Source: Gnetum montanum
Taxonomy: Eukaryota > Plantae > Gnetophyta
Direction: 5' to 3'
DNA: 64,000 nt
NCBI GenBank assembly: GCA_015680685.1
Contig: MNCI01001743.1
Coordinates: 154,472-218,471, forward strand
Shown: positions 500-39,849 of the stretch, piece by piece
How positions within the stretch are numbered: position 1 is the first letter of the stretch
Layout: the number at the start of each line of letters is the position of its first letter
Notes under the pieces: generated by a model
Database searches by the model: none
Seen by the model: the letters and a program-made list of their open reading frames with translations, nothing else
What the model was told of the DNA's origin: nothing
Made by a program: the position numbers and the translations under genes

Positions 500-633
500 T
501 CCTAAAATTTTAAGTCCAAAAATTTTAAGTCCAAAAATTTAAGTCCAAAATTTTAAGTCCTAAAATTTTAAGTCCAAAATTTTAAGTCCAAAAATTTTAA
601 ATCCTAAAATTTTAAGTCCAAAATTTTAAGACC
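500..633. repeat. Minisatellite, ~9 units of 14-15 bp (AAAATTTTAAGTCC[A/T])
   Basis: Directly visible tandem units; smaller tandem pairs also at 147-180 and 186-250. Confidence 0.9.
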
Positions 634-3600
634 GGATGGGCACCAAGGCCGGATGGGTGGCCAATTGAATCCTTCCGGGAATTTGCAGATATTCTAGGTA
701 GCAATATCCTAGACACTTTCAACAACATGCTTAAGTAGCATCAGGTCCGTAGGGAAATTAATTGCTCCCACATCATCCTGATCCCTAAAATTGAAGGACC
801 TTCAAAGGCTGCCCACTGCAGACCCATTAGGGTCTATAACACCCTCCTTAGACTATTCACTAAACTTCTGGTCCCGAGATTGAGGCCTTTGATGCCACAT
901 TTAGTCCATCATAATCAAACTGGGTTTGTGTGGGAGAGGCTACTTCAGGACTAGGTTATTTTGTTGCATGAAACTCTTCACTCGCTGCGTGTTCAGCGCT
1001 TCCCCAGACTTTGTCTTAAGTTGGATATAACAAAAGCTTATGACTATGTTAGTTAGGAGGCATTACGGGCTATCATGGTCAAGAAAGGTTTTAGTCAAGG
1101 ATTTCTTGACTTATGCCTGCAAATTCAATCTTCAGCCACTTATTCCATTGATCTTGATAGGCTGCTCTAGGGTTTCTCTTCGCCAAGGCAGGGTCTTCAA
1201 CAAGGTGACCCATTATCACCATATCTATTCATTATGGTGATGGATACCATGCAGGATTACTGTCGTGCGAAAGGGGTACAAGGATTACAAATCAACAAAG
1301 GTGGAGTATATGGCAAAGCACTACGCTGATGATACAATGTTTTATACTCAGGCGTCAGTGCTACAAGCGAGAGCGTTGGATTGAACGTTGTTGGAAATGG
1401 CAAGAGAAATTGGGCTAGAGGTGAATAGGGCAAAGTTGGTGCTTTACACTGTTCATACCAACTCCAAGGTTGAGGTGTGTATCACACAAACACTAGGGAT
1501 GTTGCCAAGTACTTATGGCAACCAATATTTAGGGTTCCCCATGTTTGAATGGGGTCAGAAAAAAACTTGGATCCATGTTCTCAAACATATCCAACTACAA
1601 ATCAAGCATTAGACCATGCATTTTTTAACATGAAAAGGGCAAATCCTATTGGCTATGTCTATGTTGCCTACTATTGCCAGATTTATGTTGTCGATTACTA
1701 CCCCCTGCCCTCGAGCTCAACAATAAAGTTGATCAAACAATTCAAAGCTTCATTTGGTTTGGGGGGAAAGGGGGGAGGCATATCCATCTGGTAAGATGGG
1801 ATACAATCGCACAAACGAGGAAGGTGGGTGATCTTGGGATTTCAAAATTTGCGGACCTGGTGATAGTGAGACAGCAATAACTGGTCCATCGCCTGACACG
1901 ACCTAACACACAGCTAGTTCCTTGGATATGGATTATCCATCAAAAATATCACCAGTGGACTGCTACTCCACATGATTCGAGGCTCTAGTGATCGATGTGC
2001 CAACATGTCCACTACATGATGCAACTAGGGTGGTCTAATGTTCAACCAAAAGACATCTTTTCGAGGCAATTCCCTGCAGTTCCCGAGTGGCAACAAGTGT
2101 AGCAAGGATGCCTACCAGACAAAATCAAAGCATTCTTATGGCTTATTAATCATGTAGTGATGCTAGTTAGGGTGGAGTTAAGACGGCACAAATTACAAAT
2201 TCAGGACACTTGTCCAACATGTGGGTAGGCGACAGAAACTTGGTGACACTTGGCATTTGAATGCACGTTCAGTACTACAATGTGGTGAAGTGCCAGGATT
2301 AGACCATCGATTATTTTAAGCAAAGATTCTACAGCAACTGCTATTCTCTAGTGCTTGTGAAAGGTAGGTAACCCACTAGTTTTTGGGCAGGTGCCACTTC
2401 CATTGCTAGCACAAGCGGCTGCTAAAGGCACTAGGCTGTGGAGGGAAGTTGTGGCCACAATGGGAATGATGCCAACATTCAAGCCACATTGCCACCATTT
2501 TCAAGAAAACATGGAGTTGTGGTACCTAGTGCAATCGGTTGGCTAGGCAAGATTTTTGCCGCATTTGCTTGAGGATCCCACCCTGCCAAATGGCAAGTTC
2601 TTTGCCAACTAGCAAGGTAATTGCACAACATTTTGGGGGATTATGATCAAATTGTCTGAAGAGGCGTTGGCTAGGGCTCTAGAAGGGCAATTGACTAGTC
2701 AGTGTGTGGACCCAACGATGCGTGGGCTTCAGGAAGCTTAGCATTTCTTTCTAGGTCCATACCCTACAACAGTTAGCGAGCAAATTCCTAAGTCTGCTTT
2801 GCCACCATTGTGGTAGCTGGCAATTGAGCTTGTTGAAAGGTTTTTCGTGCAAACGGGTAATGTTTCGAAACTCCAAGGAGTCCATTTTGTGCTCTTTAAG
2901 TGTCTCAAAATGGGACAGACAGTGAATACTCTTGGATTTTTCCTTGTGTCATTGCGTCGAAGGCAACCCAAGAGACACTCGAGGCTTATCCTGGCTCTAT
3001 GGTGTGTGGCCCATCTTACACCCGTGATGCAGGAAATGAAACCAGCAAGTATGATGACCTACCATACAATTTACTAGAGATGCAAACTACTGCCAACTAC
3101 CCAACAGATGGAGGTTCCTAAAGGATCTATTGTCATGGCCCTTATGGCTACCAAGCAGCTTAGGCAAACCAATGATGCGCCACAAGACATGCCGCCACAC
3201 GTGGATTTGACTATTGTGAGGGCACAAGCCAAGGTGGAGAAAGAGGAGGCCACTAGTGAAGTGAGAACAAATGAGCATCGGGTTTGGGAGGCCAAATGGG
3301 AAGCTAGTGAGGTCACATTTCAACGGGAACTAGGGAACTACCCATACATGCGCATGCACATTAACCGTAATGTGACCTAGTCGAATCTAAGATGGCATAT
3401 TAGGCTTGCTTCCGCAAAGTTGCACCCTGATGGAAAAGGCTCTGAAGAAGAACAAGTGAGGAAGGCCAAGGCCTTTAAATCTTTTCAACAGGCGGTGGCT
3501 TTTGTGGACTCACAGGAACTCCACATGCAGATGGACATGCTACATGCTCAACTCCAGCCATATTGCCATTACACTCACCTTCCCCACCATCCCCACAATT

Positions 3601-3966
3601 TAGAGGATGAATGATTGTTTGCAACTGTTCGGCCCCCCTGGATGGGGGGTCTTTGCTTGTTTGTTTCTTTTGTTTTGGTTGCCTATGTTGATGGGAAGTC
3701 ATTTTGGCTGATGTCAACACTCGGTACACCAGTTGGTGTTGGCTTGGTGGGACATTGTTTGGTGCTTTAACATTTTAATGGTGTTTAATGTTTTAATGTT
3801 TGTTAGTCGTTGGAGTTAGGGTGGTCTTGGTTAACCCCATTTTGTTGGGGAGGACAGTGCTCCTCCCAGGTCTATGTTTTGTCTCGTTGATCAGGGTGTC
3901 TTCCCTAATTTTGTACATAATCTTCTTTGTTTTTTAATACAATCCTAAAAATTTGCTCAAAAAAAT
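632..3966 (+). mobile_element. 5'-truncated degenerate L1-clade LINE (copy 1): RT - zf-RVT - accessory domain - coiled coil - J-domain - 3'UTR - poly(A)
   Basis: APRPDGWP (~640), KLDITKAYD (~1018), QGDPLSPYLF (1201), YADD (1322), zf-RVT CPTC..H...C (~2210-2265), HPD 3423-3431, stop 3614, A-tail ~3959-3966. No TSD identified. Confidence 0.9.
3333..3614 (+). pseudogene. DnaJ J-domain plus short tail at the C-terminus of LINE ORF2 (copy 1)
   Basis: NYPYMRMHINRNVT*SNLRWHIRLASAKLHPDGKGSEEEQVRKAKAFKSFQQAVAFV; same reading frame as zf-RVT (2088) and the accessory domain (2460-3000), broken only by point stops. Confidence 0.8.
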
Positions 3967-4290
3967 ATAACATTACATTAAGCATGAACATCAACATAAT
4001 TTCATTATTTATACTCCCCTATACATTACAATAGGTTTTAGATGTAAGCTACACTGCAGGTTGTTTCTTTGTGTTACATAGCAATATTCAATATTCACCA
4101 TCAACTAAAACAAATGAGTTAAAATATGTCTAAAATCAACTACTTAAGTGATACAAAATAAGTTGAAGAATGCATTGTTGAGCTTCCTAAGAATGTGTTT
4201 CTCCTTGAAAGAAAAATGTGCACTCAAAGTGCTAAAAACCTTTAAACTACTAATGACACATCCAAAATGATGTATGCTCATTTCTTCTAC

Positions 4291-5585
4291 TTTTATTTTT
4301 TAAGAAGAATTTGGGGTTTGTATTAGAAACAGTTTGCAATGGCGCATGTACAAGAGTAGATAATTAAAAGGGGAGAAGAACCCCTTCCAATAGTGATATA
4401 CATGGGGGTGAGAACTCCCTTAACACTATCAAGGGCAATATACACCCCAGACCAACAAAACAAGAACAATCCTCAAGTCAGAAGACCCCCAAGAGCAAGA
4501 ATCAAAACCAAAATGTCTATGAAGTGTCCCTCTCCAACACAAAATGGGGACAAAATGGAGATAGAGGCAAACCCAGTAATCATATGCAATGGCCCTAGAA
4601 CCCAAAAAGAACCCCTAGTCAAAAGAAAACAGCAAAACATCCCCCACATCCAGCCCAAGCCACGTTAAAGTTGTCTTGCTAGTCATGTGCAGGTGCAACG
4701 GGCCCTTTCCTATGCATGAATAGCATGCAGCATTACCCAATGATACTCAATCGTGATGAATGTAGCTACCTGCAAGAATTCTTTATACTTTTCTTTGCTT
4801 TTCATGAGCTCCCCCAAATTGCCAGCCCCATCAAGATGAAATTTGGCCACATTTCTTCTAATGTATTGGTGCAAAGCATGCCACATGGCGTTTCGATTAA
4901 CATTCATGATAACATATGTGCAACGACCCATCTACAGCCAACAACAGGCATTGGCCTCATGTGCCTCATTCTGGCTTTTCCTCATTTGTTCTAATTCTTC
5001 CATGTCTCAAACCCATTGCTCCTATGCTTCTACAACCCTCCTCTAGTGTTCTTCTTCTAGACGAAACTCCTCTTTCATCTGCTTGCACAAAGCATCTTCC
5101 ATCTCACATCTTATAGCCGCCTCCCTTAGGTCCCTCTAGTGTTGTTCCTCCTTGGCAAACTTTGTACAGTGTTGGTCCTCTAGCTTAGCCTAGCATCTAT
5201 GATCATATTCCTACTCCTACCATTCTCCTTCCCAAGCAACTCTTTCCTCTGCATGGATCCAAGCAGCCATCTCTTCAGTGGCCCTAGCCAAGTTAGCCTC
5301 AAACTTGGCTTGCAATTCTCTACGGATATCTTTAGTATGCTACTGGCCCATCTTGTACAAGTTGGGTGATGGATTTGTAACCGATTCCAGCCAGTCAAAC
5401 ACAAAGCCCTTCCTGCCCACTCCTAGAGCCCCAGGCGCAGCTGGTGCTGAAGAGGAGGCAGCCCACTCCGCAGCCTGGTGCCACCTATACACCACTATAA
5501 AAGGTGATGGACAACAAGGAGGTGGATCCAACGGCTGAGCCACCCTCCACAATGCTAGAATCAGCCCCAAATGATGACCTTGACA
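4291..5585 (-). mobile_element. 5'-truncated LINE 3' end (copy 2): end of accessory domain, coiled coil, J-domain, 3'UTR, poly(A)
   Basis: GHHLGLILALWR (~5580-5545); Glu/Arg-rich coiled coil 5330-4960; J-like GRCTYVIMNVNRNAMWHALHQYIRRNVAKFHLDG..KYKEFLQVATFI (4931-4710); T-tract at 4291-4301. Confidence 0.85.
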
Positions 5586-5696
5586 AATTTTGTAGCTGTC
5601 TTAAGTTACAAATTTTGTTATTCAAATGGTGGTTTAATGTTTAAAGAAATCTTTAATGTTAAAAAGTGTCAATTTATAATTGGTGTTTTTAATGAT

Positions 5697-6833: not shown

Positions 6834-6971
6834 CTGAAAAAAAATAGAAATACCTTTTCACTTTGGGAAAAAAATAAGTTGTGACTACTAAAGTTAACAA
6901 CATCAACCAGAAAAGTAAACAAAGATAACATTAAATCAAAAGGAACATGAAGGAAGGACAACAAAGGAGAA

Positions 6972-8382
6972 ATGTTGGGCTGGAAACCAGGAGAGAGCAG
7001 GGGTTCGGGCAGTTCTAGGAAGTGCGGTGCGGATAGGGCGGGAGCAAGCGGCACCAGCAACACAGTTGAGGGCCAGGAGGAGGTAGGACTAGGTGAGGGA
7101 TCAGGAGCAAGGTTGGGCATAAATTATGGCATAGGGTCTGGTGAGGCTTCTGGTGCAGGGTCAGATTTGGGCTTTGGCAAGGTCAGTGGTGGGTATGGGG
7201 GTAGGGCTGCATGAGGCGTTCCACACCCTGCAAACACCCCCCCTCCCCCGCAGCCCCCACATGGTGCCCCGGGGCATGGTATTGAGGCTTGTATCCACTG
7301 TGAGGGTTCGATGCAGCTGAAAGTTAAAGCCCTCCCCAATGAGGGGCTGAAGACAATGAGTTAAGCCTGATTGGGAATACGTCTTGGCCAGCACCAGTCC
7401 CAAGCTAGATTTGGTTAAACAATGGATGGTCATGCATTGGGGGTTTTGCCCAATGGAGGTCCAGGGGACCTCTTATTGTTTGTTTTTCAATCTGTGTTAA
7501 ACCAAGATAAAGTTCTCCTAGGCGAGCCTTGGTTTTTTGGGGCCAAGGGCCTAGCCCTTGCACACTAGCACCCTAGTGCCCACAAAGAGCCAGATCTCTT
7601 TTCTAGGGCACTTGTGTGGATACGTGTCTTTGAGATCCCATGGGAGCTATGGATGACAGACTTTCTTAGGACATTGGCAGGGTTTTTTGGAGAGTTTATC
7701 ACCTTCGATTGTTTCACTTGCTCCATGGAAAGAATAGGCTATGCTTGCTTTTGCATGTGGCAATCGCTATCATTGTGAAATCTAACCAAGAGGTGGTCCT
7801 CGACCTTTTGACCAACGAGGAGAAAGTTCAAGTGGAATATGATAATGTTGTGACTGACAAACCTACAGTGACGAAACCCACATAAGCTAAGCATTATAGT
7901 GTCTACTACAAGGCTGGCCACTTGATGGCTGATTGTCGAGTGAAGCCAAAGGCCCCAAGCCCAAAGAAAACTGGAAATGGTTGGACAATTTGTACCAGGC
8001 AGGAGGGGGGGACAGGCTCAAGGTCAAAGACAAGGAGTGGATCCCTCAATGCCGCCTACCCTAGTGAAGGTTCCCCAAGGGGACTTGGGGAAGGATCTGT
8101 CAAGTTCCCTAGTACGAGTGGACCACAATCCCTAAGAGGTTGGGAATACCGCTTGGTGGATGGGTCTTCATCATGAGGGGGAGCACAATGCCATCCATGT
8201 TAGAGGTTACTGGGGGATGTGCCGATTCAAAAGGGGGATTTCCAATCTCGCCTAATTTTGGCAAGGTTGGGAGGCCATTGGGCCCTATGTCCCAAACAAA
8301 GAAGACATAGATGGAGACTAACCTGGGGGTCCAAACAACCCTCAGGGAGGTTTACAAAAAGCATTAAACTAGCAAAACATGA
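6972..8382 (+). pseudogene. LINE ORF1 (Gly-rich N-terminus, DUF4283-like, zinc knuckle), disrupted
   Basis: Plant L1 ORF1 motifs across frameshifts; ends ..VQTTLREVYKK.TSKT-TGA overlapping the ORF2 ATG. Confidence 0.75.
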
Positions 8383-11300
8383 GGACCCTCTCATGGAACT
8401 GCAAGGTGCAAGGTACTCCCTACAAAAGAAATACCCTCAAAGATTTAGTGTGTAGGGAACGCTGTGATGTAGTTTGCTTGCAAGAGACAAAGCTACTGCA
8501 ACAAGAATGTCACTGGTTATGCTAGCCCGGTTGGTAGAAGCAGTTTGTGGCCTGTCAAGGGATGGAAAGAGGCCTAGCCTCTTTGACATTGGCCTTTTGA
8601 GACCGTGCACATGTCCACATGGAGTATTACCATTCGCTTCCAACAAACCAGCATCTAGCTTACAAATTTCTACAACACCCAAAGATGGGAGGAGTAGCTG
8701 AGGGAAATGCAAAGGATTGCCCCCTGATCCTGGATAGGAGGCAATGGATTCTGGTAGGGGATTTCAACCAAAGATTGTATGCATGGGAGAAGTCAAATGG
8801 GTGGACCCAAGAGCCTCGTGGTGGTCTGCCATTCCTACAGTTTCTGGTGTCTCATGATCTAGTTGATATGGATATCAAAGATTGCTAGTTCAAGTGCAGC
8901 AACCGCAAAAAAGGTAGGGACCGAGTCATGACAAAGATTGATAGGGTGTGGGTCAACTCAGATATTCTGTTGAATCAGGGGATGAATGTTCATGGGAAAG
9001 AACAACTAGCTTTTGATCATAGGTCAATTCTATGCCAAGTGGGAACTCTGGTTTCGAGGGGGCCTACATCATTTCGTTTCGAATGATTTTGGCTTACTAA
9101 GTCATGGCTGCACCCAATGGTGGAAAGGATCTAAAGGAACTACTCGTCGCGGGTTGACACCAAGGAGTTTCTCAAGAGGGGGTTACACTTGCTAGGGTAG
9201 GAGATAAAGGCATCAAAGGTGGAGGAGAGGTTCTCTTTCTGATCCAACCGGGGGACGTTGCTACAACATCTGGCAGTGATTCAATTGGACTAGGAATTGG
9301 TTAGGGGTTGGATGACGCAGAAGGTGAGGTGCTAACAAAGCTTTAGAACCTGAACACTAAGGAGGAAGCTAAATGGAGGCAGCATAGGCATGCGCATTGG
9401 CTTAAGGAGGGGGATAGGAATACTTGTTTTTTCTTCGCAGCAACTAACTTGATGTGTCTCTCCAAAAAGATTCATAGTCTTGCTTTCTAGGGGAAATACA
9501 ATGGTTGGGAGGCAGGAGATCACCCAAGCCATTATGGAGTACTAGTCCAACATTTGGCAACGGAAGGAGACCATGCCTCTATCAATTCACATTGAAAAGA
9601 TTATGGATGAGGAGAACAACCAATGGTTACTAGAACCATTCACTCGAGAGGAGCAGGATGGGGCTCTTGCATCAATGAAAGTTGGGAAGGCGCCTGGGCC
9701 TAACAATTGGCCTATGGAATTCTTTAGAGCTTTCATTGATGTTCTAGGGGATAATCTATTGGATGCCTTCAACGCAATGCTAAGTTGGCAACAAGTCCGG
9801 AGGGAGATAAACTATTCCCAGCTCGTCCTTATTCCTAATACGGCTAACCCCATGGATCCTTCTCAATTCAAGCCTATTGGGGTGTGTAACACTCTCCTTT
9901 GCCTCTTTGCTAAGCTCTTAGTTGCTCGGCTAGGGCCTCTGATGTTGTGCTTAGTGGGACCGCAACAGGCAAGTTTTGTTAAAGGCAGGTTCATTCAGGA
10001 CCAAGTTATCTAGGTGCAAGAAGTGTTGCATTCACTAAGGGCAACCAATTACCTAGGCATGTGTCTTGAACTAGATATTACTAAAGCCTATGACACGGTG
10101 TCCTAGCACTCTCTCAAAGAAATCATGTTGCAAAAAGGCTTTCACCCACACTTTGTAGATTTATGCATACACATCCAAACGTTGGGGGCTTTTTCTTTGG
10201 ATCTGGAGGGGAAACTATGCAATTTTCATCCCCTGCCAGGGGGTTAAGACAAGGGGACCACCTTTCTCCATATCTCTTTATTTTTGTGATGGACACCCTA
10301 CAAACTTATTGTATGTTAGAGGGGGTTAGAGACTTGCATATTGCCTAAGTCAGTTGCCTGGTAGAGCACTACGCTGATGATACCAATTTATTCTCTTGGG
10401 TTGTTGTGTCCCAAGCACTAGCGATAAATAGGATGCTGCAACAAATGGCAAAGGAGATTGGCCTAGAAATTAATAGGGGTAAGGTTGCAGTGCACCTAGC
10501 CAACACGAATGCCCAAGTGAAGAGTCAAATTGTGCAACTTCTGGGGGTCTTGCTCGGCTTCACGAGGGACACTTACCTTGGGCTGCCTCTTTGCGATTGG
10601 CATCGAAGGCATGCATAGGTTGGCCTTCTTCAGAGCCTGCAGATATGGATTGGCCATTGGACAACTAAGTTCCTGACTCGGGTTGAGAAGTCACTATTAG
10701 CAACGTTTGTGCTTTCGATATGACTCATTATATAGCTTCCGTGGCCTCCGCCTTGCTAATATCATTCAAAAGGTTGATCAACTGATAAGGAATTTTACTT
10801 GGTCAAGGGGTAAAAGGGAAGATCGCATGCATCTTGTTAACTAGGATACAAGAAGCTGGGAGTCTTGGTATCATCCAATTCCATGATATTATTGCTATGG
10901 GGTATCAAGGCCTCCTTAATAGGTTGTTGAGGTAGGGCAACGGTGCCGCTCAATGGATTATAATCATGAACAACAAGTATAGACAATGGGAGGAGCTTGC
11001 ATGGGACTCTCATATCTAGCATGCCCTTTGTAGGCACGCACGGGTGGCTATGGACTCCAGGCTAGCAAGTGTGCCTCTCCAACAACTTATTAAGTCCAAA
11101 TATCTAGCGGTTAGGGGATGGCAAGGGATATGGAAGGGCCAAGTGCCAAAGAAAATAAAAACATTTATTTGGCCGGCAAATCATTTGGCCATTCCGCTTC
11201 AGGCAATTCTAAGATAGCAAGGGGTGAACGTGGCAGACATGTGTCCCCTTTGCATGGCTACGTCTGAAATGGTTGCTCACTTCATTTATTACTGCATGTT

Positions 11301-12910
11301 CACTATCAGTGTTTGGTGGGCTGCGAATGTTCAACCCTTGTTGAAGTTTGATGAAAATTCCAAAGTTGCAACAGTGTTGTTGTCCATCTAAAAAGCGTGC
11401 AATCACTAGGTTTTTGGCAGTGTGTTGTTGCACCACCGACACAGATTGTCACTATGGGTACCAACTTTGGCGGGAGGTGCATTCAATGATGGGGGTTACC
11501 CCCACTTTTGAGCCAACATGTGTGGGCTACAAGAAAACTTAGTCTTGTGGAATATGGTCTCGCGAGTGGGGTGGGCTGACCTCCAAACCATGCTCTAGGG
11601 GGAGCCAAACCTAGAGAATAGTCAGTTCTACACAAACTAGCACGAGGACTACACACTATTTTGGGGGGATGCAGATTGGGTTGACGAAGGAGCTGATTGT
11701 GGAGTATTTGGGGGTGTTGGCGAGACGTGAAATGGTCCTACCCAAGGGTCGTGGCCTCCAAGATGTTGAAGATTTTTTTTAGACTAGTGCCCAAAATAAG
11801 AAGCAGATAAGTTCCCAAGTCAGCACTCCAACCAATATGGCAAGACGCCACCAAGCTAGTGGATAGGTTTTTTGTGCACTCTAGCAACGTCAGAAAGTTG
11901 CAAGGCATGCACTTTAGTTTCTTCAGGAGCCGAAGGAGGGGGTATGTAGTCAACCTGTCACTTTTCACTCTCGCAATGCTACGGTGTCAAAGGCAACCAA
12001 GATGATTCTGGCTCTGTGGCGGGCATCTTGGCCTCCCATCCCCCCACAGCTGAGGGGCACTCCGTTTCAGGCTATTTATGGGTGAAGGTGGTCACAATGC
12101 GCTCCGCTAGTGTTGGTGGACCTAACAAAGGAACCTGAAGAGCAAGAGGCTCGATCGAGGTCTTTGGAGTCACATGCCGAGGAGGGTTCCAGGATGGTTG
12201 CAATGGAGGTGCATGTTGGGCCTATGGAGCTACATGTTGGGAAGAGCTCAGGGGTGATGTCACCTAGGATCATTGATGATTCTGCGCTCCCAGATCTTGA
12301 AGCATTGCTAACTAAGGCAATGAAGGAGGCAACTACATAGGCCCAGGTGGAGGAGAGAGCCATCTAGGAGGCCAAGGGGTAGACAAGGGAGGAAGAGTTC
12401 CAACAACAGTTGGAACAAACCGAGCGACTCCATGCTAAAGAGTTTAAGGAGGAGAGAAGGCATCAAGATGTGGCTGAAGTGATGACACTAAATGAGATAG
12501 AGGTTGCGCTCCGGCATTGAATTCGAAAGTAGCTCTAGGAAGAGGTGCGACAGTAGGAGGCCTAGGAGAGGAAGGACCAAGAGGCGTTGGAGGCAGCTCA
12601 AATCTAGCAGCAGCAAGATCAAGCACATGAGCATAATGCTCCTTCCTAGCTCATTAACATCGGCCAAAATACGTCATGGAAGGCGCTACAATGGTACATT
12701 CACCGTGGGGGGGGGGAAGCTACACCCGAATGGAAGGGGGGGTGCGGAGGAGTGCACAAGGAAAGCGGAGGCATTTAAGGAATTTCAACAAGCCACTACT
12801 TTTCTGGATACTGAGAGGCACCGGATTGTGCTCAACACTATCCATAGCCAAGAGCGGGCAATCTACTATTGCACAGGCCTTCCTTGCCATATATTGGCTA
12901 TGGGCCTAAG
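8379..12910 (+). pseudogene. LINE ORF2: APE endonuclease - RT - zf-RVT - accessory domain - coiled coil - J-domain, disrupted
   Basis: Ordered motifs as in the element entry; J-region GGKLHPNGRGGAEECTRKAEAFKEFQQATTFL (HPN 12723-12731, CCG-AAT, plausibly from CCG-GAT). Confidence 0.85.
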
Positions 12911-13399
12911 GTGTTGTGTTCTTTTTGGGTTTTGTTTTTTCTTTATTTGAACTAATGTCAGTGGGTGTGTCCTAGGAATCTCTTGGATCAAGACACCAAT
13001 TTTGAACTAATTAGGGATATCCGAGTTGGAGGGGTTTTTGTCATGGAAAAGGCTGAGGGCTGTGGGGGGTTTTCTTGTTTTGAGGGATATCAGGGGAGCA
13101 ATCTCCCCTCATTTTGTGATTGTACAGAACTCTTATAAATTCCTTTTGTGATTAATTTAATGACCCAAAATTTTTTCAAAAAAAAAAAAACAATCAAAAG
13201 GAACATTATCCCATGGTAAAAATTTCTTATAAATTTTATTCCATATTACATAATCTTCCAAAGCACTAAAATTTAAAGTAGGAACCTAATCACTTGCAAA
13301 ATTAACAAACAAAAAACCCAAAAAAAAAACTTTCATTATTTTTTAGGGTTTTTATATTAAGAGGACCAAAATTTACATACAAATCATATCAACAAAACC

Positions 13400-16300
13400 A
13401 GTCTCTGAAAGGCTACTGTGTGGGTAGTGGAGCATGGGTGAGCAAGTGAGTACAATGGAAGCAGGAGTAATTGGGGCTGGTGCAATGGGGGCAACTGTAA
13501 TGGGAGTAGGTGTGGTCAATGAAGGATGCAAAGGAGGCGACCATTTTGAGGGAACGAAGAGTGGCAATGAGAGTCTAGGCTACAAAGGGGGAGGCAAGGC
13601 AACAAAGCGGACACCATGTATGGCAATGGTGTAGGTTTTGCTAACAAGGGAAGCTATGTAGGGGCAGCCAATTGTGCGATTTTGGGCACAGGTTCAAAGC
13701 AAAGACCAAATGATGGCCAAGGTGGGTAGTCTACAGGGCCGTGGAAGCCTAGTATGGGGAGAGTGGATGAGGTCTATTGCTCAGGAGAGGGATTGAGGCT
13801 CAAGATGCATGCACTTGCCTCGGAGGAAGTCCACACGATGAGATGCAACCTCATTGGGAGGTGCGTCTCAGCGAAAGCCAAGCCAAGGATGAAGGCTATG
13901 AGGCATTGGGCTATTTCGTCTTGGGAAATTTTAGGTTTGGAAATATGCATGCTTATAAGAGATTTGCTCCTTTCCATTTTTCCAAATCTAGATGCCAAGG
14001 ACCGAATCCTGCTAGGAGGGCAGTGGTTTCTTGGAGCCAGAGGACAAGCTCTGTTGCCTTGGCATCTAAGCATCCACCATGCGACAGACTTATTCTTGCA
14101 AGCACCAGTCCTGGTCCAAGTGTCGGGTATGCAATGGGAGTTTTGGACTATAGAATTTTTACATACACTCACCGAGTTCTTTGGGGAGTTCATAATTTTT
14201 GACAAATTCATCATAATGAAGGAAAGAATGGGCTTTGTTTGATTGTGTGTCTAGCGGTCACTCTCCTTAGAGGACCTCCTAAAAGAGGTTACTCTCAACC
14301 TGCCAACTAGGGAGGAAGTCTTGGGGTGGAGTACATGGGATCTAGGAGCTACGGGATATGTGAAAAGGGGAATCATTCTACTAAGGAGTGCTGCTATTGG
14401 AAAAAGGAGCGACTTCAACAACGGCGGAAGGGAGTGGATGGGTACACTGTCATTGGCCCAAAAAAGGGGAGGGTTGCTAAGGGGTTGGTGAAGCTGAAAA
14501 TCCCTCAGGGTGTTTCATCCCCCCTTGCCCCTCAAGGCCCTCCTCCATCACCCATCCCCTCCCCCATCCTCCCCACTTCAATCATCACCTAGACCCTCCC
14601 TCACCCCTAAACTATGGGGGTCAACTAACAGAAAGGGGGCACTCAGGAACTGGTTCTCCCCTTTGGGAGACTTGGCAAAAACTAAGGAAACACCCCTAGC
14701 TATCGCAATAGACTCATCATTTCAAGTCCCACCCTTCGATGACTGGATATGGGCAAAATGGGATTCCTCCAAACCACTAATGGAGCCCGTCCATTAGGCA
14801 TTACAAGCAAAGGAGGTCTTAGGATTTGATGTAGTATCTAAGCCAAGGAAGATGAGCCAACCCATAGGCCTTGAATTGAGTTTGAAGAAAACAAAGAAGG
14901 AAATTGATTTGGGAACCCAGACCACCCTAAAAGGAGTGTACCAGAAAAGGTCTACCAGTACACCATGAATATCATTTCATGGAATTGCAAAGGATAGGGT
15001 AACCCCTATAAACGCTATACCCTGAAAGAGTTAACGAGAATCGGGAAGGTTGATGTAGTGTGCCTGCAAGAGACCAAGTTAACTAGGGCACAAAGGCAGG
15101 CTATGGAAAGGCCATGATGGAAGAAGATTTTTGTGGATTCAAGAGGGAAGGTAGGAGGACTCACCACTATTGCTCGGGTCCCTATACAACTATTGGACTC
15201 CTCGAGATGGAGTATTATCACCTTCATGCCAACACAGGGCTTATGGTTAATGAATTTCTATGGGCTGCAAACCCTAGAGGCCCATCTGGGTGAGCTTTAT
15301 CATATTGCTGAGAAAATTCCAAATCGAACAACTTGGCTTTTCATTGGTGATTTTAATTAGAGCTATTCCCTTAGAAGAAGACGGGGAGATTCAACCCCGT
15401 TGCTAGGAAGCTAGGAATCCATAAGGAATCTGCAAACCTTCGAGCTTGTAGATGTGGGGGTCTCCAAGAATAGGAGAGTTTTCTCCAAGGGTCTGTTCCA
15501 AAAATAGGGACGGACAAGTGCCAAAGTCCACTCTCCTGCCCCTCTAGCAAGAGGCAGCGGAGGTCGTTGAAGGTTTCTTTGTGCAATCAAGAAACATACG
15601 GAAACTCCAAGGGATCCATTTTTCTTTCCTCTTATGCATGCAACTCAGTCGCCTATCAAATCTCCCAAAGTTTTGCCTGGCACCACTCCAAAGAAGCAAA
15701 AGAGGATGACATTCAAGCCTAATTTTGGCCCTCTAGAATGCAGCGCAGCCACAAGAACCTATCCTAGCCAAATCCCTCCAGATTAGGATGATGTATGTGT
15801 GCCACCATCTCTCCCTCAAGGGTGAGTCCTCCACCTTAGTCAAGCTATTTTCAAAGGTGCAACCAAAGGAGGGGTGCCAATAGTGGATGATAGGAACCTT
15901 AACTAGCAAGGATCTTCTGCATATCAACCGCTGCTCCATGACCATATCAAATTAGCAGAGGAGCAAGTCCAACAGGAGCTCCAAAGCCAATTTAAGATAG
16001 ACCTGCTTTGGGCCATCAAGGAGGTGAGGGCCCATGAACAAGCACACTGGGAGGAAGAGTTAAGCAACTGGGGGAAGGCAACCAAAATCAGATTCCAAAA
16101 GGCAAAACAATAAATGCAAGAAGCCACCATGGAGGAACAAAGCCAAAGGGAGTTGCAGGAGGCCACCAGCAGGAGTGTTCTGGAATAAGTGCTCACGATG
16201 CAACTCCAGGAGGATTTATGCCGCGAGGAATAGAAGCAGTTACAACAGGAAGAGGAGGAAGGAGCATAGTGCACCAAGGCCCTCCTTGAGGAAGAATAGC

Positions 16301-16585
16301 TTCAGCAAAGCATATGGCTACATATGAAACCAACGCACAGCATTGGTTTAGCAAGGGTCATTGTCCCTATGAAGTTATGGGGGTTAACCACAATGTCTCA
16401 TGGGCCAGTTTGAAAAGGCACATCTGGAAGGCTTCAATGAAGTTCCACCCTGACAAGGCCTCCATTGTGGAGGCCCAACAGAACCGCGAGGCCATGTATA
16501 AGGAATTCCAAGAAGCAACAAATTTCGTTGCTACATAGCAGTTTCAAGCAATTCTAGATGCAATCCATAGCTAGGAAAGAGTAAT
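13400..16585 (+). mobile_element. Internally deleted LINE (copy 4): ORF1 plus partial endonuclease fused to accessory domain, coiled coil and J-domain; 3' end lost
   Basis: DUF4283-like ORF 13754-14242; knuckle (GICEKGNHSTKEC); ORF2 ATG 14965 (MNIISWNCKG), CLQET, GDFN; jump at ~15455 into GLQE..FFVQSRNIRKLQGIHF; J-domain 16314-16538. The 5' boundary is approximate. Confidence 0.85.
16314..16538 (+). pseudogene. Best-preserved DnaJ J-domain of the LINE (copy 4)
   Basis: HCPYEVMGVNHNVSWASLKRHIWKASMKFHPDKASIVEAQQNREAMYKEFQEATNFV fits the J consensus PYEVLGV...LKKAYRKLALKFHPDK...FKEIQEAYEVL; HPD at 16446-16454. Confidence 0.88.
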
Positions 16586-19500
16586 CTTGTAGAAGAATAT
16601 CTAGTCCTAGATGAAGCATCCTTTGATGAATCTCGTTTGTTGTGCACCCACCAATTTTCGCATAAGTGGTGCCAATCTTTGGACAAGAATCTTCGTGAAA
16701 AGTCTCAGCAGTGTATTACACATCCCAATTGGTTGAAATTGGGAGGGACTCATGGGGTTTGAGACCTTAGGGATGAGCACAATGTGGGAGTCGTGCCTCA
16801 CCTGCTAACATTGAAAAATCAAATTAAAAGCATCAAGGATATTGCTACCCAAGATGTCTACAAACTCCTTAAAAATTTCAATCAACCAACCATCAAGACC
16901 CAAGGTGTTTTTCATTTTTTTCAAGATGCCATGGCCAATTGCAGTTCACCCATAGTGAAAGGGACGATCAGGTTATTATTTTCCTCTATTCCCACCACTG
17001 ACTAGATTGGAGCTGAGACAGGCAAGGTTCTCTTGTAGCTCCAAATATCAACCCAGTATTCTTGCATAATTTCAGTAATATCAGCAAGACTAGTGAAGCT
17101 TTCTCCCTTGTTTATGAGATGATGAATCCTTTTGGACCCATAGTTGGCTTTCACCTTGACAAAGAAGAACCTGGTATTCTGATCATCATCCTTCAACCAC
17201 TGGACCCTAGACCTCTACCACCAATAAATTTCCTCCTCAGCAAAGATCTCCTAAATCTCCTTCAGCACCTCTTGCTCTTCTTTAAGTAGCAGGTCCCCTT
17301 GTTCCTACTTGGCCTGTATAGCAAAGAGCTTCATTCTCAAAGTTGGGTTGATTGCTTTGAAGGAATATGTTTCTATCGTCTTCTTGGACTTAATCACTCT
17401 CTTCAGCCTGAGCAGCCCTTGCTTCAAGAAATCACGAAGATCCATTTGATTTGGATAACTAGCCCAAATGTCTTCAACCAGTGGCCTCAACTAGGGTTTA
17501 GAAAACCATGACCGCTCAAACCTGAAAGGAAAAGACCCATGAGGATAAGGTGTGTCCACCTAACACACCAGTGACCTGTGATCAAAGGTCTACCTTTCCT
17601 AACCTAAGGCAACAATGTCATGGTTCAGGAAGAACTTGGAGCTAACCCAAATCCTATCAATACAAGTCATAATCCACTCTCTCCCCTAGCATTGGTTGCA
17701 TCAAATGAAGTTGCAACCTTTAAGCTCCATGTCAACCAAATCATGATCCTACAAGAATTGCAACAAGAATCGACAACCGAGAGGATCATCAGCATCACCC
17801 CCAGACTTCTCCCAACTATGAAGGCATTTGTTGAAATCCCCAATAATGATCCACTATTGTTTGTTATGGATCAATGAGGCAATGTGTCTAAGTTCCTAAA
17901 GTCGGGCTTCCCATCTTTGCGGTCTATAGAAGTTTGTGAGCCATATCCTAAGGGAGACCAAGAAAATCATCACACTCCAAGTGAAGGAGTCAACTAAGGT
18001 CAATGGCAACCTAGAGAGCATAACCAAGCCTCCCACCTTGCCTCTGCAGGCAACAAAATGGAGTTCCCATCCTGACCACTGCAACCAGAGGGATTCCTAG
18101 AGTTGCATTTTGGTTTCCTACAAATAGATGACATTACATTCTTCTATATGCATGATATCTTTCAGGGTATTGCATTTGTAGGGTGTACCCTAGCCCTGCA
18201 ATTACATGAGAGGATTCTCATGGTTTACTTGTGGACCTTTTCTAGTAGACCTCCCTCCAGGTGGTCTGAGAACCCAAGTCAACCTCAAGCTACGATTTTT
18301 TGGAACAAGCCACCAACCCTAGTGGATGCCCAGCCTTGTTTGGGTCGAAGGCCATAGCGAAACTACCTTCTTGAGCAACTCCCAAGATGTCCGTCATCTT
18401 CAACAAGACAAAGACCCATATTGTTGAAATCCAATCCATCAGGGAAGACCTCCCCCTTGCCCCTATGGGGTGCAACTAATGGGTGTGTCCCCCTCGAGGC
18501 TTGTGCAAGGGGCCAAGGTAAACATCCTTCTAGGTGAGACGGTAGGAGGCTACATTTCCGTAGTAGGACTAGACCGAGTCCGACCATGTCGTCCCACCAA
18601 AGTCCACCCCTCATCAGTTTCAGTCTTCAATGTAGGGTTCTTGGGCTTGATCCTGCAATCTTTAGTTGTGTGGTTGTTTTTGCCATAGACGACATAGGGG
18701 AATTCTGAGGGGATATGTGTTGCAGCTAATCGATCAACTGGGACATTCTCATATTCCATTGTCACTATTTCCTCTCCAAACAGAAAATCCAACATTATCT
18801 CCTTCACTGGATCCTTCGAAGACAAAGACCTCCAAACACAAAAACGTGTGTCTCCCATATGCGCCTTGGTCTCTATAAATTTGTCAAAGCTGATAAATTC
18901 CCCAAAAAAAACCCCATTGTTCATTGTTTGAAGCTCCTAAGACACATCCAAGGCCCTAATCCAAACAAGAACCATAGAAAATAGATTTGGGTCTCTATGG
19001 ACCCTTGGCCACCAATGTGTAAAGGCAAAGCCCTTTGGCTCTGAAGAACCACAAACCACCAAACAAAACCTTATCCCTGGAGATTGAAAAACAAAGAGAA
19101 GCATATCGTCCACCAGGCTACAAATCTCAACTCCATTAACACCCTAGTTTCTATAAGAGCCTTGAATTAAGTTGGGCTAGTTTGTTGCTCAGCATGCACA
19201 ATATGCATGTCAACAAGCACCTCAACATTAGCATGCCTCACAATATGCCCTTTAATCTTAGCTCCATCTATATGCTACATAGAGGTAGAGGGTCCATCAC
19301 ACTATCTAGGCCACCAAATATTCATTTTGATATTTTCATCATCCCTTGGATTATCCACAGCTGGATTCCATACCAATATTGAAGCACAATGCTAGGTGAT
19401 GCTTGTCTTTGCTAAGCATTGGTGTAGCCCATGCAGCTTTGAAACATTCTTGAACTAGGTGAAGAAACACTATACCAACTCAACAGGCCGCTGCCAATCT

Positions 19501-21462: not shown

Positions 21463-24400
21463 TCTACATCACTTAATTTCCCATTTTCTCTTGATTTTGT
21501 TGATTTTTTTATGATCAAGATATTACCAATTCTCAATGCAATAAAATTTTACCAACTACGTTTCCACCAAAAAATTGCAGTCTTTCAACCTGATCAACAT
21601 AGACGTATGATACCCTTAATTAGCCAAAATCATTTGGATTTCCGATGCTTATTGCTAAGGATCATATTTACATTAAAATGATTCACGAGTCCAAGTCTCC
21701 CTAATGCCACTTGGAATCATGCTAAAAACCCTGTATATTCATTTTGTGTCAGGCAGTACAGCCAAACTGCATAGTATCACCAAGTTTTACATGTGCACAC
21801 ATGTGTGCGTGTATTATGGTCCCAGCCATTATTTTTGGCTAACTATGCACAAAGGACCATCACTCCAGCTGTTTGTTTCTCAAGTTGACCTAGGTTCAAG
21901 CTTAGGTGTAACCACTTAAAAGCGCTTAGGCTTTTGTTCATCAATGACCCTCCCAGGACTCCACTTTGGCAAGATGAGCATTGAACCTCTAGGTGATGAT
22001 CCTTTGTGCACCTATGGTTGTATGATGGAAGCAGTACCATCAAGCCATAGGTTGGTTATCTCCAGCAAATAATCAACGAGTACCACGACCAGAATGTTTC
22101 TGTTTACTCCCGTGCTGTATTAATAAATACTGAGCAAGTGCAAAGTTTGTTGGTATACTGTTAATATTTGGTAGTTTACGCAAACTAGTTCCCAAATTGC
22201 CCTTTTATCTTGAAAAAGTCCAAAATATCTGTGCACTGAATGAATTCATGAATTATCCCGCAAAGTTCAGACCCTGAAATCTCATTTCCTGGTGGACCAA
22301 AATGTCAGAAATGAGAGTCTCATTAAAATAGTTAGTAGTCATCCTATGTNGGGCTCTGATTTCGTCGGCGAGCCTGGCCTTGGCCGCCTCCGTCATGAGG
22401 TCGTGATGTCTAGCCCGCTCTTGTTCCCTGGCCTGGAACTGGGCCTCCAGTTCGTTGCGGGCCTGGGCCAGGGCCTCCGCCCATTTTGCCTCCCACTCCC
22501 TCCGTTCCGCCGCCCGGGCCTCCGCCACCAGCTTTTGCCGTTGCTCTTCATTCCAGGAGGAGGTCGTGGGCGGAGGAGAGGGCGCAGGGGGGGCCGAGGT
22601 CGTCCCGGCCGGCCACTCGGGAGGGCGCCGCGCCCGCGGGGCCCGACGACCCCACCCGAAATGAACACCACCGGGACAGGCACCCCCCCCCCCCCCCGAC
22701 GACCCGGGGGAGCAGCTCCCCCGAGGGGGGGCAGGGTGGGGGGGCTGCTACCTCCCCTCCGCCCCCCGCCACAGAGCCAAAATCACCCCCGAGTGCTTAC
22801 CCCGGCGTTTGAGGCGGAGGGCCTCCTTAAAATAGAGGGGGAGGTTGACCTGGCCACCGGTCTTCAGGCAGCGGAGGAAGGTGAAATGCAGGCCCTGCAG
22901 CTTGGACCCGTTGCCAGACTGGACGAAGTACCGTTCCACCAGGTCCGCCCCCCGGGCCCAGAGGCGAGGGAGAGCAGATCTGGGCACCTGTCGACTGATG
23001 GTCCTTGGGATGGTCCCACGGAAGAACATCCCCGCATCCGTGAGGCCGTGGGTAGACGGGAGGATGGTTTCCCCGGCGATGGGGGTCCCCGGACAGCTGG
23101 CGATAGCTGCCTCCGTGACCCAGATTTCCCGCCCCCTGAAGAAGGTGCGGTCGTTGACCCAGTTGGAGAAGAAGGCGTCATCAGCCAGATCTGGGTCCCC
23201 CACAAGTCGCTGCAGAGGAACATCCCATCCGCATTGACTCACCAGCTGCCAGAGCTCCTCGAATTCCTGAAACCTGGCACAGTCCGGTTCGTACGTGGGC
23301 GTTTTTCCCATGGCGTCCTCGATTTCTTTCCACGCGCAGGACGCCTGCCAAACCAGCCGCTGCGGGGGAGGGCGCCGTTGCTGCCGAAAGACGAGATTGT
23401 TGCGGGCCTTCCAAACCGTCCATAGAAGTAGGGCGGCCCACGAATCCCCAGTTGCATGCCTCGGGGGGGGCACAGCGGCCGCGCACCACACGTCGCGCGT
23501 GCGGGGACAGTCGCGCACGAAGTGTGCAACAGTCTCCCCCGCCCCCCCGCATGTCGGACAAGTGTCCGCCTCGAGAAGCCCCCGCCGCCTCAATAAATTC
23601 CTGACAGGTAACGCGTCATGGTGCATCAGCCAGAGGAAGAATTTAATTTTTTCTGGCAGTCTTCCTTTCCAGACCTGCCGCCACGTGCCGCTGCGGGGGT
23701 ATTTTGCCGTCATGATGGCGCGTGGCTCAAGATGCGCCCAGCCCGAGGTCTGCATGGCGCATGCGTGCCGGGCCACCACCTGCCAGGACTTGGAGTCCCG
23801 CGTCGTCACATCCCAACGGATGTATTTGTTATTAATGACGTCGATCCAGGGGGCCGGGTCCCGAGGTGGCTGCGTAAGTCGGAGGACGAGCCTTTGCCGC
23901 CCCAGCATTAACTCATCCTCGAAAGTCGTGACACCCAGCCCGCCAGCGTCCCGCGGGCGCGCCACCTGCTCCCAACGGACCAAGTGCAGCTTGCTCCCCC
24001 CTCTGCCCCCCCCCCCACACGAAGTGCCGAACCAGGGCGTTAACGGCATTGATGACGTTTCCAGGGGGGGCGGCCACCGCCGCGACGAAACGCACGGTGG
24101 CCACGAGGATCCCGGTGGCCACCAGAAGACATCCCTTGCGGGTCAGGAACCTATTTGCCCAGTGGCTGGCCCGTCGTTCCATCTTCTCCAGAAGGGGGCC
24201 CCACGTTGCGGATTGCCCCCATCGAAAAAGGGGGATGCCAAGGTATATGTCGGTGGGAGACCCTGGCCTAATGTCCAAAGTTTGGGTCACCCTCGTTTGG
24301 ACCGGCTCGTCCACGTTCACGAAATAGACAGCGGACTTTGCCCTGTTGACCGCCAACCCCAGCTCCGCAGCCAACCGATCCAGCGCCAAATTAATGCATC

Positions 24401-25653
24401 GGGCCTATGGGACTGCCGCCCTACTAAGCAGCATCGTGTCATCCGCATAGTGCTCCGCCCGACAGGTCACCCCCGCAATGTTCAGCCCATCGACCCCGGA
24501 TGTGCAACAGTAATGTTGCATCAGGTCCATGGCAATGATGAAAAGGAGGGGAGAGAGTGGGTCCCCTTGCCTCAGTCCCCTCCCAGGAGACGCAAGGCCC
24601 CACAGCCTCCCCCCCACGTTGAAGGAATAGCCCGCCGAGGATTGCATGTGGATGCATAAACGGGTGAACTGCGGGTCGAAACCTTTATGCTGCATGATGG
24701 TCTGCAGAGCTTCCCAACTAAGGGTGTCGTAAGCCTTTGTGATGTCCAGCTTGAGACAAAGGCTCGTCTACATCACTTAATTTCCCATTTTCTCTTGATT
24801 TTGTTGATTTTTTTATGATCAAGATATTACCAATTCTCAATGCAATAAAATTTTACCAACTACGTTTCCACCAAAAAATTGCAGTCTTTCAACCTGATCA
24901 ACATAGACATATGATACCCTTAATTAGCCAAAATCATTTGGATTTCCGATGCTTATTGCTAAGGATCATATTTACATTAAAATGATTCACGAGTCCAAGT
25001 CTCCCTAATGCCACTTGGAATCATGCTAAAAACCCTGTATATTCATTTTGTGTCAGGCAGTACAGCCAAACTGCATAGTATCACCAAGTTTTACATGTGC
25101 ACACATGTGTGCATGTATTATGGTCCCAGCCATTATTTTTGGCTAACTATGCACAAAGGACCATCACTCCAGCTGTTTGTTTCTCAAGTTGACCTAGGTT
25201 CAAGCTTAGGTGTAACCACTTAAAAGAGCTTAGGCTTTTGTTCATCAATGACCCTCCCAGGACTCCACTTTGGCAAGATGAGCATTGAACCTCTACGTGA
25301 TGATCCTTTGTGCACCTATGGTTGTATGATGGAAGCAGTACCATCAAGCCATAGGTTGGTTATCTCCAGCAAATAATCAACGAGTACCACGACCAGAATG
25401 TTTCTGTTTACTCCCGTGCTGTATTAATAAATACTGAGCAAGTGCAAAGTTTGTTGGTATACTGTTAATATTTGGTAGTTTACGCAAACTAGTTCCCAAA
25501 TTGCCCTTTTATCTTGAAAAAGTCCAAAATATCTGTGCACTGAATGAATTCATGAATTATCCCGCAAAGTTCAGACCCTGAAATCTCATTTCCTGGTGGA
25601 CCAAAATGTCAGAAATGAGAGTCTCATTAAAATAGTTAGTAGCCATCCTATGT
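21463..25653. repeat. 887-bp near-identical direct duplicate (21463-22349 = 24767-25653) flanking an N and a LINE fragment; probably two haplotypes
   Basis: Constant offset of 3304 and about 5 substitutions seen; first copy ends exactly at the N (22350). Confidence 0.9.
22351..24766 (-). mobile_element. Young GC-rich 5'-truncated LINE copy (copy 7): RT C-half - zf-RVT - accessory domain - Pro-rich - coiled coil (3' part lost in gap)
   Basis: LKLDITKAYD, GLRQGDPLSPLLF, HYADD, YLGIPL, CPTCGGAGETVAHFVRDC, LWTVWKARNNLVF. One stop (24405) and frameshifts at G/C homopolymers; CpGs retained. Confidence 0.92.
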
Positions 25654-30600: not shown

Positions 30601-32228
30601 AACGGCAATAAAGATGAGCTTTTCTGATCAAACCTTGTAGCACTTAGAATGGATTAATGTTTCCTTATGCATTTATTATTCATGCACTTTACTTTAATGA
30701 ATTTTAATTTAATACCGATTAAATAACAAACATAAGTATGACCGCTTCAGGCATACGTTAATGCTTGGCAATCCCAATAGCGCCTAACGCTTGGTAACCA
30801 AGTAGCATTGCAATGTGTTCAGGATGTGTACAGAAAGTGGGAACGGATGCTTATGTTAGGATTAGTTAAGTATTAGTTAGTTATTAGATTAATTAGATTA
30901 ATTGAATATTAAATTTACTTTGTTTCCAGCACTTAGTTGATTAAAACCATAAAAGACAAAATGATAAAAATCAAATGCCTCAGTTACAATTAACCATACA
31001 CTTGCACTTCACAAGTGGAACTAAGAATACAACGAGTGCAACAATTATATTCACCTCTTAGAAATCGGTGTACTTAGAGAGCTGAAGTGTACAGAATTTG
31101 ACCAGATCGCTAAGTGAACACTAGTGATTCATATGGTTGGGCATAGGGTATATTCATTGCTCATCAATTGGGGTGCTCTTCGAGACATTATCCTCAAGAG
31201 GAGAATCAACCAAAAACTTGTTGATCCCTGCATTAATCTTTAGGCCATAGGGGCCTAGTCATTTGACATCACTGGGAAGCTGTGGGGGTTTTCTTCCCCT
31301 TGCAAGGGGCTACATTAAGGTGATCCTCTTTCCCCTTACCATTTCATTATAGCCATGGATAGCATGAATCTGTATTGCAAGATTGAAGGGATCCAAGGAC
31401 TAAATATTGAAGGGGTTGACTACATCATTGAACATTCTGTTGATGACACGATTTGATGACCCGGGTGGCAATGCCAAAGGTGCAGGCAATCAAAAGGGCT
31501 CTCAGTAGGATAGCAAAAGAAGTGGGCCTAGAGCTTAATCAGTGAAAGTCTGCAATACATGTTTTCCATACTGAGGAGATGGTTAAAAGTTAGGTTTGTC
31601 AGACCCTAAGGATTTTGCAAGGTACAATGCAAGACTCGTATTTAGGAGTGCCCATGTTTGCTTGGAACAAGCAATTGTCCAAGACTTGGTTGGTCCAAAA
31701 GCTTCAATCTCGAGTAAGGCAATAGACCTCATGTTGTTTGACTAGAAAAGGGAAGATTATTCTAGTCACCTTGGTCCTATCTACTATTGCTAGATATGTT
31801 GCCCCCGTTGTTGCTCCTCCGAAGGGCATCATTAACAAAGTTGATCAAATTGTTTGAAACTTTATTTGGTCCAAAGGAAAAGGTGGCGAATGTATGTATC
31901 TAGTCTGTTGGGAGAAGGTGGCCAAACCAAGACTTGTGGGGGTTCTGAAGGTGTTGAGATTTCATGATGTCATCTTCATCGAGTACCAGGGGATTATGAA
32001 TCAGTTCATGCAAAATGACAGTTATCAACTGCAATTGGTGCCCATACCAACCTTGGACAACAAACCCCAAGGACTCCCACATCTGGAGGAGCCTCTGCAA
32101 TTATGTGCAAAGGATTGCCCAATGGAGGCTGATGGGTGCGCAGCCATGCAAGGTTATAAATACAAATATCCCACTGTGTAGCTGGTGGGCTGCTTGGAAA
32201 GGGTGGTTGCCGCAAAATATTAAATGCC
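27690..32228 (+). mobile_element. Degenerate LINE (copy 6): partial ORF1, endonuclease, RT; 3'-truncated at the start of zf-RVT; interrupted by a solo LTR
   Basis: VWIRVLGLPWEL (ORF1); ORF2 ATG 28590; KAPRPYGWP (~29925); AYDTIH|WGAL split by the LTR; GDPLSPY (~31320); SVDD (~31437); ends at WKGWLPQNIK. Confidence 0.85.
30345..31166 (+). mobile_element. Solo LTR (Athila-like family) inserted in the LINE RT
   Basis: TGATGA...TCATCA termini; degenerate 5-bp TSD ACTAG/ATTGG; 3' half similar to the LTRs at 41398 and 60445. Confidence 0.88.
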
Positions 32229-39530: not shown

Positions 39531-39849
39531 AGTTATAAAGTTATAATTGAACTATATATCTTGGGGTGTATCTATATTACAATTATTTTGGGGTTCTAGC
39601 ATCTTTCCCGATCCCCCATGCACCCATCCCCNNNNNNNNNNNNNNNNNNNNNNNNNNNNNNNNNNNNNNNNNNNNNNNNNNNNNNNNNNNNNNNNCCACC
39701 CCCAACCCCCCCCCCCCCCCCCCCCTTCCCAAGGGAACCCTACCCCTTCCTTATATTTGTGTGGAAGATCTCCTAAAGTGCTTCATAAAAATATTAACTA
39801 AACAATCATGAACCTTTGTTGATGGTAGCATATAGCCTTTTGTATGCCA

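Follow-up and report, generated by a model that had tools for sequence, protein, structure and literature searches.

The stretch analyzed here (the window, in what follows) comprises 64,000 nucleotides from Gnetum montanum (assembly GCA_015680685.1, contig MNCI01001743.1, positions 154,472 to 218,471 of the forward strand), and contains at positions 6934-13206 a long interspersed nuclear element (LINE) that we call element C. Element C is a full-length LINE insertion with a body of 6243 bp (6949-13191), bounded by the exact 15-bp target-site duplication (TSD) AATCAAAAGGAACAT (+ strand, 6934-6948 at the 5′ end and again at 13192-13206 at the 3′ end) and carrying a poly(A) tail of 13 nt (13178-13190, +). 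Its domains follow the order DUF4283 open reading frame 1 (ORF1), APE endonuclease, reverse transcriptase (RT, Pfam RVT_1), zf-RVT, an accessory domain, a charged helical stretch, and a J-domain. Decay has been thorough in this dead copy, which has many stops and frameshifts and no stop-free run in the sense frames longer than 155 codons. The original prediction, which was made from the sequence letters, described a TSD- and poly(A)-bounded LINE of 6.24 kb in which ORF2 runs through APE, RT, and zf-RVT and then continues for ~500 codons. The boundaries and size proved correct, as did the domain order and the length of the extension (zf-RVT is followed by ~520 codons, the J-domain included), but an open frame does not exist in element C. 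We consider it likely that element C belongs to a diversified group of plant L1-type LINEs whose ORF2 ends in an accessory domain, linker, helical stretch, and J-domain, through which active copies are predicted to recruit Hsp70 in cis.

The J-domain of element C (12650-12890, +) is a relic. A frameshift in a run of G (12707-12716) splits it, leaving helices I and II in one frame and the HPN loop (12723-12731) with helices III and IV in another. Comparison of element C with the window by tblastx identified six further copies (A, B, D, E, F, and G), and the J-domain was found at the same place in three of these divergent copies, just as had been claimed. Copy A (622-3968, +, 5′-truncated) has HPD at 3423-3431; copy B (4296-5600, −, 3′ part only) has a J-domain at 4713-4931 with HLD at 4830-4838 (−); and copy D (13961-16586, +, internally deleted) has a J-domain piece at 16290-16535 with HPD at 16446-16454. 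The motif is intact in copies A (CAC CCT GAT) and D (CAC CCT GAC), and the HLD of copy B (CAT CTT GAT) and the HPN of copy C (CAC CCG AAT) are each separated from HPD by one transition (C>T or G>A). These transitions are expected decay, because the old copies are strongly depleted in CpG (observed/expected 0.22-0.36).

The J-like stretch is a genuine DnaJ-type J-domain, as the original prediction, which noted its HP[D/N] loop, had held, and profile comparisons bear this out. Compared with the Pfam DnaJ model (PF00226), the piece from copy D exceeds the cut-off of 27.8, with a score of 31.8 bits (E 1.5e-7). The J-domain of copy A reaches 13.7 bits, and copies B and C individually have no Pfam match. 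The four pieces find one another with significance when searched with phmmer in a set of 2088 six-frame sequences (E 1.7e-13 to 2e-4); starting from the J-domain of element C, copy A is matched at 1.7e-13 and copy B at 3e-6. A profile built from the four copies matches J-domains only in the PDB (43 of 43 matches at E ≤ 1), and its best match, the J-domain of a Plasmodium type II Hsp40 (6rzy_A, E 2.4e-6), is aligned across helices I-IV. An AlphaFold model of the J-domain piece, with a mean predicted local distance difference test score (pLDDT) of 53, has fold neighbors that are nearly all J-domains (root-mean-square deviation 2.1-2.6 Å over 52-56 columns, E ≥ 0.35). The abundance of J-domains among the neighbors of so poor a model gives weak but consistent support to the assignment.

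The extension that carries the J-domain is present, in the same order, wherever the 3′ half of a copy has survived (A, B, C, D, and F). In copies A, B, and C, the J-domain is followed by ~300 nt that end in a shared terminal motif (TAAT..AA..CC.AAA.T..T.AAAAAA), with an A run after it. In element C, this 3′ untranslated region (UTR) occupies 12951-13177 (+), with the motif that it has in common with copies A and B identified by alignment, and the TSD and poly(A) tail lie outside both the J-domain and the 3′ tail. To judge from this arrangement, the J-domain is an inherited internal part of the retrotransposed unit. A one-off 3′ transduction is ruled out because independent, diverged insertions agree in internal order and have the 3′ end proper to the family. 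The claim that the J-domain is heritable within the mobile unit is thus upheld by a collinear extension in five copies and a homologous tail in three.

The 3′ end has features of its own. Copies C, A, and B (13095-13177; 3880-3962; 4302-4400 on the − strand) have all kept the ~40 nt that directly precede the A run, the remaining DNA being unalignable, and just upstream of these nucleotides lies a short G-rich hairpin (GGGGAG..CTCCCC in element C) with unremarkable folding z-scores (0.67, −1.89, and −2.38). The conserved ~40 nt and the hairpin may serve as the signal by which the element's own RT recognizes the 3′ end.

It had also been predicted that the J segment lies inside the ORF2 frame, and three copies agree with this. 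In copy A, a single frame (2817-3611) leads from the accessory domain to a terminal stop after the J-domain, with two internal stops. Copy B has an open run of 86 codons (5343-5600) across the junction of accessory domain and linker, with no stop there. Copy F (22351-24770, −) is young, GC-rich, and 5′-truncated, and an assembly N at 22350 cuts it off. Its open run of 464 codons (22751-24142) takes in zf-RVT and the accessory domain as well as the post-RT region; a TAG (22748-22750) comes next, and the linker and helical stretch go on in the same frame to the N. A second stop lies at 24405-24407, and the sole frameshift of this copy is in a G homopolymer (~23995-24015). RNA reads and DNA contigs from the same species were aligned to copy F at a likeness of at least 88%. 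At the first letter of both stops, ~90-100% of the RNA reads and of the DNA contig depth from other members carry the letter of a sense codon, so the two stops are private to copy F. Moreover, the stops of copies A, B, and F share no position. This evidence is indirect but consistent, and it suggests that the ancestral product was one polyprotein with the J-domain in the ORF2 frame.

It is important to note how far the copies have diverged. The sole DNA match between them in blastn is one stretch of 152 bp, and because similarity is almost nil at this level, the copies are old separate lineages rather than recent duplicates. In segments picked by amino acid similarity, third-codon positions differ between copies at 0.55-0.72, which is near saturation. 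An attempt to calculate the ratio of nonsynonymous to synonymous divergence (dN/dS) between copies by NG86 gave no dS value, as dS is saturated. Amino acid identity between copies A and C is 42-44% in the J-domain, 37-52% in the RT core, and 46% in the accessory domain. Protein matches are significant where DNA similarity is gone, and long purifying selection on the J-domain is drawn from this; the pattern argues for selection during divergence of the lineages about as strong as that on the enzyme domains.

The stretch between zf-RVT and the J-domain has two parts. The accessory domain (11345-12002, +; conserved core 11811-12002) occupies the slot where plant L1s often have RNase H. A phmmer search with the accessory domain of copy F recovered those of copies A (2e-16), C (1.8e-13), and D (7.8e-10). 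A Pfam scan of the four copies (A, C, D, and F) gave no match even at E ≤ 10, no sequence relatives of the copy F domain were found in the protein collection searched, and a wide fold search with a model of pLDDT 53 gave generic helical-bundle matches only (Z ≤ 5.5). A protein language-model search with two independent copies placed the domain nearest to Transposase_32 (PF20167) and ATHILA ORF1 (PF03078) (0.90, 0.87). These families are the mark of an accessory ORF in Athila-type long terminal repeat (LTR) retrotransposons (PMC11728184). Neither family gave a hidden Markov model (HMM) match at E ≤ 10 in the four copies, nor a fold match, and we treat the possible link as a lead rather than as membership. 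RVT_3 (RNase H) has no Pfam match in the pieces that follow zf-RVT in copies A, C, D, and F, and no copy in the window terminates at zf-RVT.

The linker and the charged helical (coiled-coil-like) stretch (12003-12649, +) have tblastx matches to copies A, B, and F, and a motif of the form (E/V)WEAKW(A/E) in this region is common to copies A and F. The linker is of low complexity, and it and most of the 3′ UTR keep nothing that can be aligned between copies.

Upstream of the extension, the backbone of element C is that of a plant L1-type LINE, as shown by the APE endonuclease, RVT_1 followed by zf-RVT, a DUF4283 ORF1, and the poly(A) tail with TSD. Pfam scans were run on stop-free pieces, and most scores for element C fall below the cut-offs because these pieces are fragments of a relic. 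The ORF1 relic (6972-8173, +) has a DUF4283 core at 7569-7775 that does pass (36.2 bits, cut-off 27.2), and a decayed CCHC knuckle (~7886-7960) that was recognized by eye only, in translation. The APE relic of ORF2 (8230-9300, +), with tblastx matches to copies D, E, and G, is represented by fragmentary pieces of Exo_endo_phos (8373-8522, E 8.6e-5) and Exo_endo_phos_2 (8601-8885, E 0.011), both under their cut-offs. The RT relic (9546-10720, +) has a YADD motif and RVT_1 pieces at 10094-10345 and 10349-10615 (23.3 and 19.9 bits), and it shares 37-66% amino acid identity with copies A, E, F, and G. In the post-RT region and zinc domain (10760-11388, +), zf-RVT is found at 11020-11214 and 11218-11388 (21.1 and 19.7 bits); the homologous region in copy F exceeds the cut-off, at 59.8 bits.

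The nearest protein-database match to the 433-residue ORF of copy F is an L1-type RVT_1 plus zf-RVT protein of Cajanus, 45% identical over 15% of the query. Searches for protein relatives with this ORF, the accessory domain, and the helical stretch, in which the length window and word index leave out full ORF2 proteins, returned four distant L1 fragments or nothing.

The other copies, and what surrounds them, make the left part of the window a nest of LINEs. Copies E (16604-19107, −) and G (27826-32188, +) have no 3′ part. Copies D and E adjoin tail to tail at 16586/16604; copy D is without the entire RT (the equivalent of 8768-11780 in element C) and its J-domain is cut at 16586, and copy E is cut within the RT at 16604. 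This junction was probably made by deletion or rearrangement. In copy G, the RT is broken by ~840 bp without LINE similarity (30338-31175), which looks like a nested insertion. A tandem array (497-630) of nine copies of the 15-nt unit AAGTCCTAAAATTTT, with 90% matches, lies directly upstream of the point at which copy A is 5′-truncated. The single-N assembly join at 22350 cuts copy F, and unrelated AT-rich DNA lies beyond it. Base composition separates copy F (GC 64%, CpG observed/expected 0.78) from the older copies (GC 42-47%, with the depleted CpG values given above), and within one LINE group, copy F and the others (A-E and G) clearly form a series by age in methylation-type decay. The right half of the window contains other transposon debris, including an LTR-retrotransposon gag relic (49571-50020, −; Pfam Retrotrans_gag, 38.9 bits), and a gap of 64 N at 39632-39695.

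Members of the copy F family are numerous. About 2480 short contigs per DNA run match copy F, with summed depths in the thousands, and 834 oligo-dT RNA reads, most of them 90-95% alike, cover the whole of its stretch. These data show an abundant family with either pervasive low-level transcripts or DNA carry-over. At 24064, a 2-nt difference from copy F occurs in 8 of 18 RNA reads versus ~4-5% of DNA contig depth, and it may be that the transcribed members are not typical of the family as a whole in the genome. This difference was considered as an account of the frameshift in copy F and rejected, as it lies ~50 nt away from the G-run.

What could a LINE do with a J-domain? J-domains bind Hsp70 through the HPD loop and helix II and thereby induce it to hydrolyze ATP. 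LINE ORF2 proteins (ORF2p) are large, present in small amounts, and difficult to fold, and the handling of ORF2p and its ribonucleoproteins (RNPs) by host chaperones is poorly understood. If the J-domain of active copies behaves as J-domains generally do, its HPD loop would dock Hsp70 of the host, cytosolic or nuclear, onto ORF2p in cis and stimulate the ATPase of the docked Hsp70. The element would thereby bring its own co-chaperone for the folding or stabilization of an ORF2p polyprotein of ~1700 residues. Alternatively, Hsp70 might remodel the RNP at the target site during target-primed reverse transcription. Of the roles that can be imagined, these two are the most economical. A fuller version, in which a long-lived plant L1 lineage depends on an ORF2p J-domain that recruits Hsp70 (for folding, RNP remodeling, or retrotransposition) and in which the accessory domain was perhaps exchanged with Athila-type LTR retrotransposons, seems to us plausible though somewhat short of probable.

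Several observations weigh against a chaperone-recruiting ORF2p and should be kept in view. Copies A, B, and C each fall under the Pfam DnaJ cut-off, and the AlphaFold model of the J-domain piece is poor (pLDDT 52.9), although its helix order fits the J fold. An uninterrupted ORF2 from APE to the J-domain occurs in no copy in the window, none of which is intact, and copy F, the youngest, ends at the assembly join before reaching its J-domain. The choice of segments by amino acid similarity biases the codon-position comparison toward looking selected. Finally, RNA depth tracks DNA copy depth along copy F (Spearman 0.76), so the reads do not demonstrate an active element.

Other explanations for the module have to be weighed as well. 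It may be fused and under selection but have host chromatin or the silencing machinery as its target, for instance as a competitor or mimic of the J-domain proteins that partner methyl-DNA readers, or it may have kept a J-like scaffold and lost the ability to signal to Hsp70. Together with MBD5/6, plant J-domain proteins such as SILENZIO do take part in the silencing of transposons (PMC8616336), and the CpG depletion of the old copies (0.22-0.36) marks this LINE family as a methylation target. Nothing in the sequence suggests targeting to chromatin, however, and a scaffold that had lost its signal is at odds with HPD being ancestral in all four copies; we regard this pair of explanations as unlikely. 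An anti-silencing role for the J-domain is, in itself, possible, with no support from the sequence.

A second explanation keeps the module in the LINE but has it translated as a separate downstream ORF3, so that the helical stretch and J-domain would form a free, small co-chaperone. The in-frame TAG of copy F sits exactly between the accessory domain and the linker, as this would lead one to expect. Against it, that TAG is private, with a sense codon in most reads and contigs of the family; no stop position is common to copies A, B, and F, and copy B is open across the junction; and the linker keeps the ORF2 frame in copies A and F. A separate ORF3 therefore strikes us as very unlikely. It is hardly credible that the likeness to a J-domain arose by chance, or that a host DnaJ exon was picked up in a single 3′ transduction: copy D alone passes the Pfam cut-off unaided, but four copies are mutually significant (phmmer E 1.7e-13 to 2e-4), their place is the same in insertions that are independent and diverged, and in copies A, B, and C the J-domain is followed by the 3′ end proper to the family.

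A J-domain that forms part of ORF2p and recruits Hsp70 can be set beside several known systems. Polyomavirus large and small T antigens carry an HPD J-domain that harnesses host Hsc70, and they resemble the LINE in being products of a genetic parasite that encodes its own HPD J-domain. The viral domain, however, is N-terminal in the replication protein of a DNA virus, whereas here it is C-terminal in the RT of a retrotransposon. T-antigen J-domains (1gh6, 2pf4, and 1faf) are among the weak profile and fold matches, the best being cellular type I/II DnaJ, and no specific sequence relationship between the LINE J-domain and T antigens was found in these matches.

Closer in kind are LINEs with other additions at the C terminus of ORF2. 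One lineage of plant L1s has acquired an archaeal-like RNase H (RVT_3) at this position (Smyshlyaev et al. 2013, as reported in PMC4686597). It shares with the present group the DUF4283/CCHC ORF1, APE, RT, zf-RVT, and an extra C-terminal ORF2 domain inherited across the lineage; it differs in that, here, the RNase H slot is filled by an accessory domain that is helical and unrelated, together with a long linker, a helical stretch, and a J-domain. In insect R1 LINEs, a tobamovirus-like SF1 helicase is fused to the ORF2 C terminus after a long spacer (PMC4686597). These are alike in having a foreign C-terminal domain, past a spacer without recognizable similarity, that is proposed to aid RNP or RNA handling. 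They are unlike in clade, host kingdom, and domain, the helicase being an RNA enzyme and the J-domain a predicted co-chaperone module that would recruit a host ATPase. Athila/Tat LTR retrotransposons have in common with the group the accessory ORF domain that the language model places nearest to the LINE accessory domain (0.90, 0.87), but the latter has no HMM match at E ≤ 10, or fold match, to theirs.

The combination of a LINE with a J-domain is probably new. A search of the full-text literature, with the architectures in Repbase, Dfam, and InterPro outside its reach, found no LINE or other transposon described as having a J-domain, and the main text of a large survey of L1 domain variation contains no DnaJ. 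A whole-library phmmer search with the J-domain piece of copy D gave 11 matches, and those scanned with Pfam included no LINE fusion (all were generic DnaJ proteins, except for one unrelated 1835-residue protein). This blank is uninformative about LINE fusions, because the J-domain copies in the window score only 20-48 bits against each other.

If the fuller version set out above is right, this would be the first transposable element known to have its own J-domain. The J-domain is a third type of module that LINEs have acquired at the C terminus of ORF2, after RNase H and helicase, and parallels the J-domains of polyomavirus T antigens. A LINE lineage that has long kept its own J-domain would provide natural genetic evidence that the recruitment of Hsp70 limits retrotransposition.

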